From assembly GCA_020137815.1 (NCBI GenBank), contig CM035350.1, positions 6,634,001 to 6,698,000 of the forward strand: a stretch of 64,000 nt of DNA, in the 5' to 3' direction. This DNA is from Hormiphora californensis (taxonomy: Eukaryota > Animalia > Ctenophora). Below, piece after piece: positions 37,005 through 43,600 of the stretch (position 1 is the first letter of the stretch; every line of letters begins with the position of its first letter). Below the pieces are notes generated by a model, which had not been told where the DNA came from, ran no database searches, and saw only the letters and a program-made list of their open reading frames with translations. The translations under genes and the position numbers were made by a program.

Positions 37005-38002
37005 CAGATGGACAAGAAGTCAAAGGTGATTTTGGTTCTTTTGGACCTTTCTGCTGCCTAATGCCTTTGACACTATTTCGCATACTAAGCTGATCCATCG
37101 CTTGAAGCAGGATTATGGGGTGACTGGGAAAGTCCTCTGTTGGATTGAATCGTATCTCAAAGACCGCAAAGCAAAGGTGAAGATTGGGACAGCGGAATCG
37201 GAATCCAGGGCCATCGCTATTGGAGTGCCACAGGGATCTATTCTTGGGCCGCTCTTATTCATCCTATACACCAGAGACATGCAGAGAATTGCTGAAATGT
37301 ATGGCCTTAGCTTACATATGTATGCTGATGATAGTCAACTGGCCATTTCTTTCATCCCGAAAACCTTCAATGAAGTCGTCGAAAGAGTACAGAAGTGCGT
37401 GTCGCATATCAAAGTATGGATGGCACAGAACCTTCTAAAGCTGAACCCGAACAAAACTGAAATCCTTGTAATGAGAAACAAATGGGATAGATCTGATAAT
37501 CCAACGACCATAAAAATTGTTGATGAAGCCGATGAAGGTACTGAGGTTAAACTAACTGCGAAAAACCTTGGTGTCATTTTTGACAGCGAACTCACCATGT
37601 CCCAGCACATCTCTAGAGTGATTCAGTCGTGCAACTATCAGCTGATTAACATGTGGAGAGTTGCTGGCAATCTGACTAGGCAACAAAAGATCCAGCTTGT
37701 CAACTCATTAATTCATTCCAGAATTGACTACTGCAGCGCATTACTCGTTGGGATTAAAGACAGTGATGTGAGGCGCTTGCAGAAGCTACAAAATTCTGCA
37801 ACTCGTTTTATATTTGGCCAACGAAGTAGACGAGGTGTTACTGATCTCCGTAAGAAGTGCCACTTTCTACCCATTAGACACAGAGTCGAGTACAAGATAT
37901 GTCTGCTAGTCTATAAGTCACTTAACAACGACACACCCGGATACATGGCAGACATGGTTCAAAAGCGTAAACCAAAGGCTAAATGTCTGCGAGTGGATAC
38001 TG
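37005..38002 (+). mobile_element. 5'- and 3'-truncated CR1/L2-group LINE reverse transcriptase fragment
   Basis: LVLLDLSAA-FDT, GVPQGSILGPLLF, YADD, LKLNPNKTE, SRIDYC and HFLPI motifs. A small insertion creates a stop near 37060. Confidence 0.9.
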
Positions 38003-40277
38003 AGGACCCACTTTTTGGACGAAAAAAGAGAAGAAAATGGGAAAACATGCCAAAAAGTGAAAAAATCGTCGAAAAAAGTGAAAAAATGAGCCGATAAGGA
38101 ACCATAATAAAGTTCAAGAGCCTCCAAGAGCACCCAAGAGCGCACCCGATCGAAGAGAGACCACACCTGAGAGCGTACCACACCCAAAAGAGACCACATC
38201 CAAGAGCGCACCACCTCCAGAAGACACCACTTCAAGAGCGCACCACATCAAAGAGAGCTCCCCATCCAGAAGATACCACGCGCAGGGGACACCACGCGCA
38301 GAAGAGACCAGCGCGGCGTTGTATTTGCGCGTGCGGTCTCTTCTGCGCGTGGTGTCCCCTGCGCGCGGTATCTTCTGGATGGGGAGCTCTCTTTGATGTG
38401 GTGCGCTCTTGGAGTGGTGTCTTTTGGAGGTGGTGCGCTCTTGGATGGGGTGCGCTCTTGAACTTTATTATGGTTCCTTATTTTCAGTTTAAAAAACGAA
38501 TGCGCGCGGGAAAAAGCTGATGTGGCAGCGCTATTGACCAATATGGTCCAGACCACCCTTCGCGCGTTACATTTAAATGCATTTTCTGCAGCGCTGGACC
38601 CAAAAATTTTTTCGTGAATGAACGCCGCGCACCACCCCTGAAGGCTTGTTAGTGGTGGGGACGTTGTTTCGATAGGGATCCCTAAAAAAGTTCAGTATTT
38701 ACACAGCGTTTACACAGTCTTTACACAGTCGTTACACCCAGAGCGGCGCGTGCTGCGTTTTGCGGCTTTTTCTAAGAAAATATTGGATTGTGTGCTGCAC
38801 AATTGAGTAAATTGAGCGCTGTGGCGAAAAAAGTTTCCGAAAACGCTGCAAATCGAGTGCGAAAGACGCAGTCTTTACACCCAGAGCGGCGCGGGCGCTC
38901 TGGGTGTAACGACTGTGTAAAGACTGTGTAAACGCTGTGTAAATACTGAACTTTTTTAGGGATCCCTATCGACTGATCAAAACGGCGTTCTCCTAGCATT
39001 AACAATGTAAAGGGCTAAAAGCGGGATATAAACCATAAGGGACCAGTTACAGATTTGGAACCGGGCGTCAGTTTCCTGATGGGAGAATTTTTGCGCACTG
39101 CTGACAATGAATCCTGCTCAACTCCCAGGGGCGGTGCGCGGCGTTCATCCACGAAAAAAATTTTGGGTCCAGCGCTGCAGAAAATGTATCACGCGAGGTG
39201 GTTCTGGACCCTATTGGTCAATAGCGCTGCCGCGTAAGCTTTTTCTTGCGCGCATTCGTTTTTTCAATCGAAAATCGGCTCATTTTTTCACTTTTTTTGT
39301 GGGGGGGATCCCATGGCATACTTTGGTATACTTTGGCACTTTCCACGACTTTTTCAGCGATTTTCCATATACCAAAGTATACCAAAGTATACCAAAGTAT
39401 ACCAAGGTATACCAAAGTATACCATAAAAATTTTGAAAAAGGTAAAATTTAAGCGATAAGTTAACATAAATGACTAAATTTGTAAAACTACATCCTTATT
39501 TCTTTATAAGTTGGTAATATAACGCTTATTAAACCGATTTTTACGTTTTTGTTACATCATCCGGCTAGTGCTTCTAGGCTTGCCACTCGGGTTCGATTCC
39601 CGGTGAAGGCAATTTTTGAAAAATTTTTGGAGACTTTACCAAATACTATTTGAACATTTTCTTGACTTTTTAAAAGTTTTTTTTTTATCATACTCAAATG
39701 GGTCCCAATTTGTCAAACCCCAGTTTTCTGACTCACCATTTTATAGGTAATATTTTCCCTCGATTCTATGAATTTAGCCTATTTAGCACCATTGTCCAAT
39801 TTTATGAGTCAAGAAAGTTTATATAAAATGTTTTAAAGCCTTAACTGTTGTAAATTAACACTTTAAAGTACTTTAAAGTTATTAAAAAGATATGGTATAC
39901 TTTGGTATACTTTGGTACTTTCCACATATTTTTTTGGGATTTTCCATATACCAAAGTATACCAAAGTATACCAAAGTATACCATGGGATCCCCCCCTTTT
40001 TTGTTTGTTTTTACTGATTTTTTCACTTTTTAGCATGTTTTCCCATTTTCTTCTCCTCTCTCGTCCTAAAAGTGGGTCCTGGACCCAATGGACCCAGCCT
40101 TGCTTCGCACCTATGACAACTCCCCATTCATTCTAGCTGGATATTTCGTCGCGCAATGTAAATTATGACGCGCAGCATGATTCAATCGGGAATCTACCAT
40201 CAGGAATCTCACATCAGGAATCTCACATCAGGAATCTCCCATCAGGAAACTGACGTCCGGTTCCAAATCTGTAACTG
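38003..40277. mobile_element. Composite of nested and interleaved non-autonomous DNA elements
   Basis: Inverted-repeat pairs: AGGACCCACTTTT (38003 / 40080); TAAGGAACCATAATAAAGTTCAAGAGC palindrome (about 38096-38480); GGGATCCCTAAAAAAG MITE (38675-38966); CAGTTACAGATTTGGAACCGG (39044 / 40277). Also (accaaagtat)n arrays. Confidence 0.7.
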
Positions 40278-40662
40278 TATGTGTATATTTGAGTGAAGAT
40301 TAAGTCTATCTTATCAGGAACCGGAAATATCATAGAAGGGTTCACCCTTCTCCAAACTACTGTTACATACTATTAGGGGGCATTCTCCAAACTACTGTTA
40401 CATACTATTAGAGGCCATTATAGATGCAATAAATTGTCTAAATCATAAGATTACAGGAGTGAAAGGAGGGATCAATTCAACACATTTTAATATGCGGTTT
40501 TTTGCCGTGAGATGAACACAAGAGGGCAGGGCCGGGTGCTATCATGTGCATGTACGACGCCGCACACAAGGGCAGATACTTAGCTATCGATAGTTTTAAA
40601 ATGAGCATGTTTTAAACTAAGTATCCAAATTGTTATTTTCACTTCCCTTCCTTTAGTTAGTT

Positions 40663-43600
40663 ATGGATGTAACTCTCGACTACGATGAAAGTTTCAGTAA
40701 GTAACAAGTTTGTACTGATGTATGGGGGGACACGTCCGGGGCGCGAGAGGTCATACGAAGTCAAAACACGGTGGTTAGTACGAACGTTTCGGGGTTGTGC
40801 CCCTTCTTCAGCTCAAATTAATAGTGTTGAAAAGTTTGAAACTCTGAAAAGATTGAAACTCTGTTTCAAACTTTTCAACACTACTTTAAACAAATTAATT
40901 TGAGCTGAAGAAGGGGCACAACCCCGAAACGTTCGTACTAACCACCGTGTTTTGACTTGGTATGACCTCCCACGCCCCGGACGTGTCCCCCCACACACCA
41001 AGTTATCACCCCGTCCGCCTTTTCAACAACATGAAGTTTGTACTGACTCAAACAATTTGTTGCTGTGTGATTGTTGTGGTTGGGACGGGGGTGCAGGTGG
41101 GGGGGGGGGGGGGGGTCCCCCAACTGTATCAGACATCCATGACCCCAAATACCCCTAACTGTCCTGACACCTGAAAGTTGGGACCCACACCTATTTTTCC
41201 AGAAAATTTCTAATTCTTGACAGTTAGGGGTCAACCTCTCCCAAATTCTTGGACCCACCCCCAAAAATAGTGCGGGTAGAACCCCAAATCGTCAGTGTGA
41301 TGCCTGACCAAAATCATAGTGCGCAAAAATTGGTCACTGTGGTGCCTTCAGGACCCAAAATTCCCAAATATTGACCCAAATTTCCAAAACAGTTGGGTTG
41401 GACCCCCCCTCCCCCCCCCCCCCCCCCCCCCCGGTTGGGAGTTTGTTGTTTGATTATTGGTTTGTTGTTTGATTATTGGTGGCGCTGTCACCTCTCGCGG
41501 GCTTCGTTTGGCGTGCTACACACGCGATTTGTAAGGGTGACTGCGTCACCAAGTTTGATTACAAGTGGGCATATATCGGCGATATGTCTACACTTGTAAA
41601 CACTAAACATTTAGTCTAACATCTAGATTCTAGACTAATATAAATTCCCCTCTCTTCAGAAACGAGTGACGTCAGCAAATTAGATAACACACAAGAAGGT
41701 AAGTAAAGGAGGGTTAGAACTGGTGATTGTGTTATAGTATTTCTCTGTATAGCACAAGCTAGGCTGCTTATATGTATGCTCTGCTTTATTGTGTATGCTA
41801 CTTATATGGTAGCATGCTACTTATATTGTCCTAACACTGGTTATCTATTTTCAGAGTTGGAAGACTCGTCATCAGAGGTAACATTGGTGTCCCTAACCTC
41901 CATAACTGGCTCCCTAATATATCTCCATGATACTGTCATGATAACACTCAATAATTGACAGTGATTTGAATAACGTTTTCACATAGGCTGCAACTAAACT
42001 AGAGTTCATCTCAGGTGGATGCCTCTTCTCCCAACAAAACAGGTGATTGTTCAGACTGGGGAGTGGGGTTTGGTTTGGTTTGGGCTGCTCATCTGGGACT
42101 GTAAACAGTCACACAGCCAGCCAAGTCTCGCTGTTTGCTTTTGCATCTAACAATGTATTGACCTAGTGTATTCTCACTTACTAAAGATTTACATTCTCTA
42201 CTATTTGCAGACAAGGAAGTGATAGAAGAAGGGGAGAAGGAAACAGCAGAGGGGGACTCACAAAATGAGGAGGGAGAAAAGGAAGAACCAGAAGCGGATG
42301 GTGCCAAATCTGACAGTGAAGAAAAAGAAAACGTAACATTCTAAAACACAATCACCGTCTGTAACTATCTCTCTCCACTCTCTTTTTCCATTTAAATTTG
42401 TTTCCCAAAATAACAAGTTAACTCAGGCCGAAGACGCTGTTGAACTCACATCAAACGCTTTTGAAAACGACCTTTTAGGAGCTGAGAAGAGACCAGGTAA
42501 ATGTGATATACAGATTGAACACTCGACAGATGTAGTCTTTTATCAAATTGTTGTTAATACAACTATTCTCTTTCAGAAGAACCCAAGAAAGAAGAGCCCA
42601 AAAAAGAGGCCACCCCTCCTCCCCCTGCAGTGCCTAAGAAAATTGCACCGGTATGAAATATCTTCTATCGACAAAACAACATCCAAAACACACTTCCCCA
42701 ACCATATCTTCCCTCCAATTTAGCCGCCCAAGATCCACAAGAGAGACTACGAGGTGCCAGAATCAGCGCCAGCGAGACCACGAATAAAATGGTCACTTGG
42801 CATCGTCAAACAACTTGTGTCCACTGATCTTCTCTCGGTGAGCGCCAAACGAGTCCGATCAGTGAAAAGTACACTGCTTCAGCACTTCTACCTCTACACT
42901 CTAATGTTTGCGGCGCGCGATCCTTCTTTTATTTTGCTCAGCTCCAATTCAAAATATGCGAGTGAAATGAAAGCAATTAACTAGTGGAATGGAGGCAATT
43001 AACTAGTCCTAATTAAACCCTCTGTTTTCCCAGGGAATGGTTGAGACAAAGCTGGTGAAAGAGGAAGAGCCAGTTAAAAAGAGGACAACTTCTCGGAGCG
43101 AGCAAGCCCCATCAACCCAACCCAAAAAACAGGCAAAACGGGAGGAAGAGGACCTAGATTTTGAGGAATCTGAGAACGATAGTGCTGCCGAACAGGAGAT
43201 GGAGCCTGCCCGAGATCCCACAGCCTTCCCAGCCCCACCATCGGAGCCAGTTGGTAGATCAAGAAAGGAGGAAAATAGAGCTCTTCTAATTGCCAATCTG
43301 ATCAGACCCTTCACGGTCCTGCAGCTAAAAACAATGTTGTCACACTGTGGGAAAGTTAAAAGTATCTGGATAAATACCATCAAGAGCCGCTGCTATGTTG
43401 TGGTAGGTATTTAAATACATGGTAGGAGCAACTTCTCTTTTTTTTAGCACAATCTCTAGAACTTTTTTTACTTGTATTATTGTGTGATTCCCTACCACTG
43501 ATATGTTTATTTGTAGTTCGCCACGATTGAAGAAGCCCAGAGGGCCCGAGAGTCGTTGCATGGATCAGTGTGGCCAAGTACCAGCCCAAAAACACTCTCA

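Follow-up and report, generated by a model that had tools for sequence, protein, structure and literature searches.

A 315-bp insertion (40719-41033), enclosed by two 13-nt copies of AAGTTTGTACTGA, lies just inside an intron of a host gene of Hormiphora californensis, a ctenophore. We analyzed it within a stretch of 64,000 nucleotides (GenBank assembly GCA_020137815.1, contig CM035350.1, positions 6,634,001 to 6,698,000 of the forward strand), here called the window, whose positions serve as coordinates throughout. The insertion contains two inverted arms that face away from its centre (40716-40822 and 40894-41000; 107 nt, 95% complementary), the shorter of which overlaps the left duplication ambiguously by 2-3 nt. 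In both arms a sequence ending in ...AATTTGAG directly abuts CTGAAGA-A-GGGG-CACAA-CCCC-GAAAC (plus strand at 40905, minus strand at 40811/40812); that is, a spliced leader (SL) is joined to a hammerhead-like core at the junction SL-CTGAAGAAGGGG. The 129-nt sequence that follows the leader in the longer arm (40905-41033) is referred to as the unit, and Table 1 gives the positions of all features. An earlier reading of the letters alone (the sequence-only reading) had described a 315-bp insertion between 13-bp direct repeats, the left one beginning 9 nt into the intron, and two divergent arms in which the leader meets the CTGAAGA core without a spacer. All of this was borne out by the sequence, which has a GTAAGT donor at 40697, by the repeat search and by inspection of both strands. 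The evidence presented here indicates that 40719-41033 is very probably a polymorphic, non-autonomous insertion of a Penelope-like element (PLE), consisting of a 129-nt fragment of a pseudo-long terminal repeat (pseudo-LTR), that was reverse-transcribed from an RNA that had been given the host SL.

Table 1. Features of the window insertion and of related loci. Positions are those of the window unless another sequence (C number) is named.
Feature	Position	Strand	Details
Left target-site duplication	40706-40718		AAGTTTGTACTGA, 13 bp; direct-repeat search (family D7); contigs of runs X1 and X5
Right target-site duplication	41034-41046		AAGTTTGTACTGA, 13 bp; repeat search and read contigs
Short arm	40719-40811	-	Unit positions 1 to ~93-96; ends in an AC-rich tract, without the 32-nt tail
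Short-arm hammerhead-like core	40782-40811	-	CUGAAGA, extra A, stem II GGGG/CCCC, then GAAACGUU
Short-arm spliced leader	40812-40843	-	32 nt, from leader A(+1), 11 nt deleted internally; compared with the leader of PMC8527503 and SL RNA genes
Extra piece	40844-40862	-	19 nt, like the leader 5' end plus one added G
Long-arm spliced leader	40863-40904	+	42 nt, matching the leader of PMC8527503 (44 nt) exactly over nt 3-44
Long-arm hammerhead-like core	40905-40934	+	Core C3 is the first base 3' of the leader
Long arm, portion common to short arm	40905-41001	+	Unit positions 1-97
Tail	41002-41033	+	32 nt, unit positions 98-129; at the long-arm end only
Sister insertion L003			Duplication GGGCCTCGATTT, 12 bp
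Sister insertion L012			Duplication AAAAACTGCCA, 11 bp
Sister insertion L004			Duplication ACCCTTTGGAGG, 12 bp
Sister insertion L046 (different hammerhead family)			Duplication of 13 bp; tail of 40 nt
SL-less (AG-type) copies of the unit	C12:5958974, C12:5959288, C3:148102, C6:5502265, C4:4475682		
Apparent SL RNA genes L061-L075	C13:3181665-3195356; C5:6431354/6431975; C9:4528298/4528842; C11:221870/222491		
Putative short first coding exon of host gene	40658-40696	+	ATG at 40664; acceptor-like ...cctttag before, GTAAGT donor after

Previously, a 44-nt trans-spliced leader was described in H. californensis, with 56% of Iso-Seq reads carrying it and 718 occurrences in the genome (PMC8527503). 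The 42-nt leader at 40863-40904 is identical to nt 3-44 of this sequence and is thus the mRNA leader of the species; the sequence-only reading, which had matched it to the Pleurobrachiidae SL, would have been refuted had it differed from mRNA 5' ends. Contigs from X12, a probable RNA run, agree with this: they are confined to 40861-40912 and then diverge into many sequences, which is the pattern expected of a leader common to many mRNAs. (Read evidence, here and below, consists of Logan contigs from four runs; RNA ends, strand and expression level lie outside their reach.)

The genes that encode the leader look different from the window insertion. A genome search for the exact leader followed by GTA returned 15 places, 14 of which have one common layout, reading leader|GTAAGCTGAG... 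with a GTAAG donor, stem-loops (one of them terminal), an Sm-like CUUUUGG and, upstream, a conserved box. These apparent SL RNA genes occur as a tandem cluster on C13 and as divergent pairs, ~550-620 bp apart, on C5, C9 and C11. We considered whether the window leaders might represent a variant SL RNA gene and rejected this candidate, as they are followed by CTGAAGA and have no GTAAG donor, Sm-like site or upstream box; the sequence-only reading had set the insertion apart from SL RNA genes by the lack of a GT donor and Sm site. Furthermore, the last 29 nt of the leader have 626 matches in the genome, which represent the same sequence and class of loci as the 718 "leader sequences" and shared first exons of PMC8527503. 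That study treats leader sequences as spliced-leader loci, whereas here ~14 look like SL RNA genes. Among 30 loci sampled on C1 (L031-L060), the 29-mer occurred 32 times and was followed by GT in two cases (L032 and L055), and GTAAGCTGAG followed the leader in none of the 30, these two included. At the other sampled loci the leader is followed by repeat or open reading frame (ORF) sequence, and most of the sampled leaders run directly into open frames of 320-490 amino acids belonging to several families, for which Pfam gave one PHD finger match and weak CCCH matches. Pfam found no reverse transcriptase (RT) or endonuclease within the 1.5 kb examined after these leaders, and for that reason we did not adopt an assignment of the frames to long interspersed nuclear elements (LINEs). 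Judging from the sequences that follow them, most of the published leader loci may be the 5' ends of retroposed repeats or retrogenes.

The unit itself has at least 48 matches in the genome, confirming that other copies exist, and copies that carry the leader coexist with copies that do not. In 19 copies the 5' end is complete and preceded by AG; the leader precedes it in 14 of these (one retaining just its last 11 nt), and genomic flank in the remaining five. At many independent loci the leader begins at its +1 or +2 position, and it ends at its splice junction. The five SL-less copies read ...CTAAC...TATTAG|CTGAAGA, with a flank that ends in ...tcCTAACacaccatttatattAG| or ...tactAG| at the exact junction nucleotide, and this flank has the form of a branch point and 3' splice site. 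Whether a copy is SL-type or AG-type makes little or no difference to the sequence of its unit; for example, L003 (SL-type) and L004 (AG-type) show no difference over positions 1-97. L004 is a 513-bp insertion with a 12-bp duplication and long and short inverted arms, and its centre holds 260 nt of unique sequence, found at four genomic places, where the two leaders would be. As no ORF of at least 105 amino acids was found in the long SL-less copies, the unit family appears to be non-autonomous. Solo short arms bearing the leader (L010 and L015) and 5'-truncated copies are also present. Overall, the copies are dispersed as singles or inverted pairs and do not form the head-to-tail tandems of retrozymes. 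Separately, three 77%-identical matches to unit positions 13-90 occur at ~1.75 kb spacing on the minus strand of C1 (157479-157559, 159232-159312 and 161007-161088), and this series could represent a relative of the unit in tandem arrangement and a possible larger parent of it.

The association between leader and core is not restricted to this family. We searched the genome for the leader 3' end followed, after 0-8 nt, by CTGANGA, 9-24 nt and GAAA, with the reversed pattern as a control, and obtained 129 matches (65 plus, 64 minus) compared with none for the control. Placing the leader 9-38 nt before the core also gave no match in the genome; the leader is thus always joined at the core or a few bases before it. 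The matches belong to at least 12 sequence families and include at least 23 head-to-head pairs among the 100 matches listed. In run X7 (DNA contigs of organism B), the leader in 40813-40913 was covered at very high summed depth, and some contigs continue from the leader and CTGA into TGATGACC..., with hints of SL-CTGATGATGA joins; leader-hammerhead joins may exist in organism B too.

The genome also contains PLEs with the same arrangement. GIY-YIG sequences gave at least 66 genome matches in open frames of up to 1039 amino acids, many arranged as inverted pairs. One PLE ORF had a GIY-YIG Pfam match (4.5e-6) and RT motifs, including YIDD, that were recognized by eye; Pfam RVT_1 and a PDB sequence search on this ORF gave no match reaching threshold. 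At nine PLE loci (within L086-L094), ~350 nt 3' of the GIY-YIG domain, we found ...ttCTAACatgtatattccgtatattatAG|cCTGAAGATGGTGC...GAAAT, in which the acceptor reads CTAAC...TATAG|cCTGAAGATGGTGC. Copies of this PLE-family layout that begin leader|CCTGAAGATGGTGC occur elsewhere in the genome, some of them head to head.

Together, these results argue that the leader was acquired by trans-splicing, as the sequence-only reading had proposed when it placed the splice at the first core base, followed by reverse transcription of the product. We infer the splicing event for three reasons: five SL-less copies carry CTAAC...TATTAG| at the junction, an RT/GIY-YIG family has the same acceptor-plus-core layout together with SL-joined copies, and the true SL RNA genes continue with GTAAGCTGAG and the Sm-like CUUUUGG. 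Trans-splicing by the host thus seems to supply these Penelope-type elements with the 5' end of their RNA.

Two other routes to a leader-bearing copy were weighed against these data. In the first, the leader would be heritable element DNA by now, captured once and passed on by read-through transcripts without fresh trans-splicing. Retrocopies do hold the leader in their DNA, and the SL-bearing units are nearly identical to one another. However, the copies begin at +1 or +2 without upstream flank at many independent loci, which read-through would not produce, and they coexist with SL-less copies that have an intact acceptor at the same base and an identical unit. In addition, at least 12 hammerhead families all have the SL 0-8 nt from the core, and, as the leader ends in AG, even an SL copy would need re-splicing to obtain a precise 5' end. 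We consider a single capture with later read-through copying unlikely. In the second, the join would be no splice: the RT, on reaching the element RNA's 5' end, would have switched template to SL RNA or another SL-capped mRNA, as in U6-LINE1 chimeras. The window junction does bear signs of template jumps, namely a third partial leader and a 17-nt duplication, but switching onto SL RNA would have copied its intron half (GTAAGCTGAG...), which never follows the leader here. Switching also gives variable junctions, whereas here the leader 3' end meets C3 without variation, at the very place where SL-less copies have an AG acceptor, and this origin is therefore very improbable. Where the two arms of the insertion meet head to head, the extra 19-nt piece belongs to a tandemly duplicated stretch of 17 nt (family D5, 40828-40861), and both this piece and the deletions inside leaders resemble the outcome of jumps or slippage there; at L003, two full leaders meet around a single base. 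The first nine bases of the leader, GTTTCAAAC (40863-40871, and at the L003 and L046 junctions), form a near-palindrome in which 8 of 9 bases are pairable between two complementary DNA (cDNA) ends. Pairing of leader-copied cDNA ends through GTTTCAAAC may favor the head-to-head joins found at many loci.

The reality of the insertion was examined using read contigs and related loci. In X1, a 177-nt contig covers 40580-40718, reads CTCAAATC and resumes from 41059. In X5, which is a different sample and study, one contig joins 40718 to 41050 and another ends exactly at 40718. These contigs skip 331-340 nt and consist of the left flank, a single duplication copy and the right flank of a slightly different haplotype. 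Because empty-site contigs are found in two samples, the insertion is polymorphic, and the empty-site allele with a single AAGTTTGTACTGA that the sequence-only reading had proposed to look for does exist. Four other insertions have the same arm pair and their own 11-13-bp duplications, three of the unit family and one of another hammerhead family. The window insertion thus has the features of an SL-tagged retrocopy: a mature leader at its 5' end, target duplications and an empty site.

Further candidate explanations are an assembly artefact, cDNA contamination and a variant SL RNA gene. Palindromes are prone to misassembly, and no short-read contig among the rows shown bridges the filled junctions, so that the filled allele rests on the assembly. 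Against this stand the sister insertions at other chromosomal sites with their own duplications and the empty-site allele, which ends exactly at the duplication, and the true SL RNA genes look different. Together with the target-site duplications, these observations answer the concern, raised in the sequence-only reading, that the structure might be a chimera, and we regard all three explanations as highly improbable.

The shape of the insertions is that of PLEs. Published PLE insertions carry a hammerhead in a pseudo-LTR, an inverted adjacent copy and a 30-40-bp tail at one end only (PMC8557442). In work with purified PLE protein in vitro, the two DNA strands were each nicked and extended, with reverse transcription beginning at two internal sites in an AC-rich stem-loop, the tail being the stretch between them (PMC11167929). 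In our analysis, all five pairs examined (window, L003, L004, L012 and L046) had one long and one short arm, tails of 32-40 nt and duplications of 11-13 bp, and the short arms ended at unit positions 93-99 within CCCCCCACACACCAA. The insertion architecture matches both the PLE integration signature and the two-start-site result obtained in vitro.

The same architecture bears on the idea of a DNA-level foldback element or miniature inverted-repeat transposable element, with 107-nt terminal inverted repeats and leader-like sequence by chance. A long inverted repeat flanked by a direct repeat is what such an element would show, and the only matches that Rfam reports are to long hairpins. These are miRNA-type matches at permissive thresholds, far below gathering scores, and were read as reflecting the palindrome, not an miRNA gene. 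However, the ends are asymmetric, as every pair has its 32-nt or longer tail at a single end; some copies are solo arms or are truncated at the 5' end; duplications are 11, 12 or 13 bp long; the leader exon at the centre is in its mature form, which arises at the RNA level only; and where the leader would be, SL-less copies have 260 nt of different sequence. A DNA transposon of this kind is accordingly a most implausible source.

The unit carries a minimal Penelope-type hammerhead motif, as judged from its sequence, and is a putative ribozyme. In an alignment of 11 sequences from six families, the columns of the core CUGANGA...GAAA were invariant, and stem II paired in 91% of cells compared with 29-55% in slid controls, with changes on both sides in four of its five pairs; at least 12 stem II variants were seen among the SL-hammerhead families. 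Most families have one additional base, A or U, directly after CUGANGA; in a few it is G. The segment GAAA-CG-U contains the palindrome ACGU, and G10.1-C11.1 is present. The traits set out for minimal PLE hammerheads are thus present: an unpaired nucleotide that separates A9 from 10.1, the pair G10.1-C11.1 and, with loop 3 absent, a palindrome at 15.2-16.2 (PMC4209133). The family consensus, GAAA-CG-UU|C, is that of a minimal hammerhead without loop 3, with cleavage predicted after GAAACGUU. This corrects the sequence-only reading in one respect: the stem III and cleavage triplet that it read as gttc-GTA rest on three substitutions that are private to the window insertion and occur in both of its arms. 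Because these substitutions are common to both, the arms derive from one source sequence. L017 and L012 begin at unit position 30 or 33, close to where cleavage is predicted, and we considered whether these starts were evidence of self-cleavage; both were rejected, as the former is a deletion relative to L004 and the latter a junction rearrangement.

Several observations weigh against our interpretation. The two window arms differ by ~5% although the insertion is polymorphic. No SL-bearing read from a master copy was found, and the probable RNA run covers the unit at a depth of 7-20. SL copies keep AG before CTGAAGA, and new captures are therefore indistinguishable from re-splicing of SL-bearing copies. 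The link to RT/GIY-YIG elements that the sequence-only reading had proposed to check holds in part: a PLE family with the same acceptor-core layout and SL copies is present, but the unit itself does not have a single ORF combining RT and GIY-YIG, and BLAST with the unit as query found nothing at E<=1 among the PLE loci examined, so that no autonomous partner was found there. For the ribozyme, the hammerhead search by Infernal that had been proposed as a check failed to return an Rfam hammerhead match at E<=10, either in 40300-41500 of the window or at eight loci of other families. Stem I, expected to span about 4-6 bp between the 5' flank and the bases beyond the cleavage site, is weak by hand count in this family, with three of six pairs formed with the genomic flank and two of six with the SL; the L046 family has a 4-bp stem I inside its 6-nt linker. 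The SL-plus-unit RNA folds no better than shuffled sequences (z = 0.15), and the unit RNA alone shows no stability beyond shuffles. Published PLE hammerheads are poor cleavers that cut as dimers or with protein help (PMC4209133, PMC11167929).

A sequence of steps that would produce the insertion can be outlined as follows. A master or pseudo-LTR copy would be transcribed with a 3' splice site (CTAAC branch, TATTAG) immediately before core C3, and a 43-nt capped leader would be trans-spliced at that AG to give an RNA of ~170 nt consisting of SL and unit. A PLE RT/GIY-YIG protein, acting in trans, would nick both target strands, 13 bp apart here and 11-13 bp apart across the insertions, and each 3'-OH would prime reverse transcription on the SL-capped RNA. 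One priming event would start at the unit end (position 129) and the other ~32 nt inward at the AC-rich tract (93-99). Both cDNAs would then reach the leader 5' end (+1 or +2) and be joined head to head. The two-primer part of this scheme is taken by analogy from in vitro work on another PLE, and we infer it on that basis.

The host gene had been labeled ACIN1 by the sequence-only reading; Pfam scans of the neighboring ORFs were uninformative and did not confirm the label. Upstream of the host exon, a 35-nt unit occurs twice in tandem (40348-40417, 94% identical). An open frame of 331 amino acids on the plus strand (37102-38094), 2.6 kb upstream of the insertion, has a Pfam RVT_1 match (2.7e-14) and is an RT fragment of another retroelement. 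Just downstream of the insertion, a ~20-G run and a ~25-C run form inverted repeats (41087-41136 and 41380-41433) around a segment of ~250 nt, and read contigs break or rejoin near 41098; the structure could be a further repeat of the foldback type or a place where assembly is error-prone.

Among known systems, the closest are the endonuclease-positive (EN+) PLEs, their non-autonomous derivatives and animal non-LTR retrozymes, which have the same minimal hammerhead in a pseudo-LTR (PMC8557442, PMC11167929, bioRxiv 10.64898/2026.07.22.740005). The insertion has in common with PLEs an inverted abutting copy, a 30-40-bp tail at one end, an AC-rich short-arm end, variable duplications and 5' truncation, and RT/GIY-YIG elements occur in the same genome. 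As differences from this group, the unit has no ORF and is not found in head-to-tail tandems. Unlike PLE copies that are 5'-truncated, both window arms reach a defined RNA 5' end that is marked by the host SL, and trans-splicing is not mentioned in the PLE literature cited here. In Drosophila virilis, Penelope has a cis-spliced intron whose 3' end coincides with the 5' end of hammerhead helix I (PMC4209133). There, too, a 3' splice site lies at the 5' edge of a PLE hammerhead, and spliced and unspliced RNAs differ in the 5' strand of stem I. The difference is that the D. virilis splice is in cis, with the intron in the element, whereas in Hormiphora the leader is supplied in trans and sets the RNA 5' end.

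Furthermore, retrogenes of dinoflagellates carry spliced-leader relics (PMC5585692, PMC12014239). In both cases, the retrocopy has the leader written into its DNA at the 5' end, which is proof that its RNA intermediate was SL-trans-spliced. The dinoflagellate cases concern host mRNAs that were copied by chance, whereas in Hormiphora, an animal, many retroelement families are involved and the acceptor is fixed beside the ribozyme. We found no description of SL trans-splicing of PLEs in the literature searched, a search that left most subscription journals outside its scope; the sequence-only reading had likewise known of none. Thus, PLEs with their hammerheads, tail and inverted copies, the dinoflagellate leader relics and the D. 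virilis cis intron were already described. New here are the SL-less, acceptor-bearing sister copies, the positional constraint of 129 versus 0 matches, the agreement of the tail with two start sites, the empty-site allele, and the separation of ~14 true SL RNA genes from hundreds of leader loci.

A broader proposal is that host SL trans-splicing has become built into the life cycle of ctenophore PLEs, with the acceptor held 0-8 nt from the hammerhead core. We put this forward tentatively, as possible and still doubtful. If it is true, splicing would give the element RNA a cap and an exact 5' end without a promoter of its own and would swap the 5' strand of stem I, so that a given transcript would either be trans-spliced or cleave itself. 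As AG is also the end of the leader, the acceptor would be restored in every retrocopy, which could then be spliced anew wherever it is transcribed, e.g., in a host intron as here. How a retroelement maintains a usable 5' end with each jump is a long-standing question, and an acceptor at the first functional base would be a promoter-free answer to it. For the genome of H. californensis, the published leader loci and shared first exons can be reread, as most look like the 5' ends of retroposed repeats and not like SL genes. For the PLEs, the leader marks the exact RNA 5' end, which makes these insertions a natural in vivo record of Penelope integration, with both strands primed, two start sites and a tail, that is otherwise known from one in vitro system only. 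Finally, a splice site lies at the 5' edge of the hammerhead both in Drosophila Penelope, in cis, and in the present elements, in trans, a hint that the connection of splicing with the ribozyme may be conserved.

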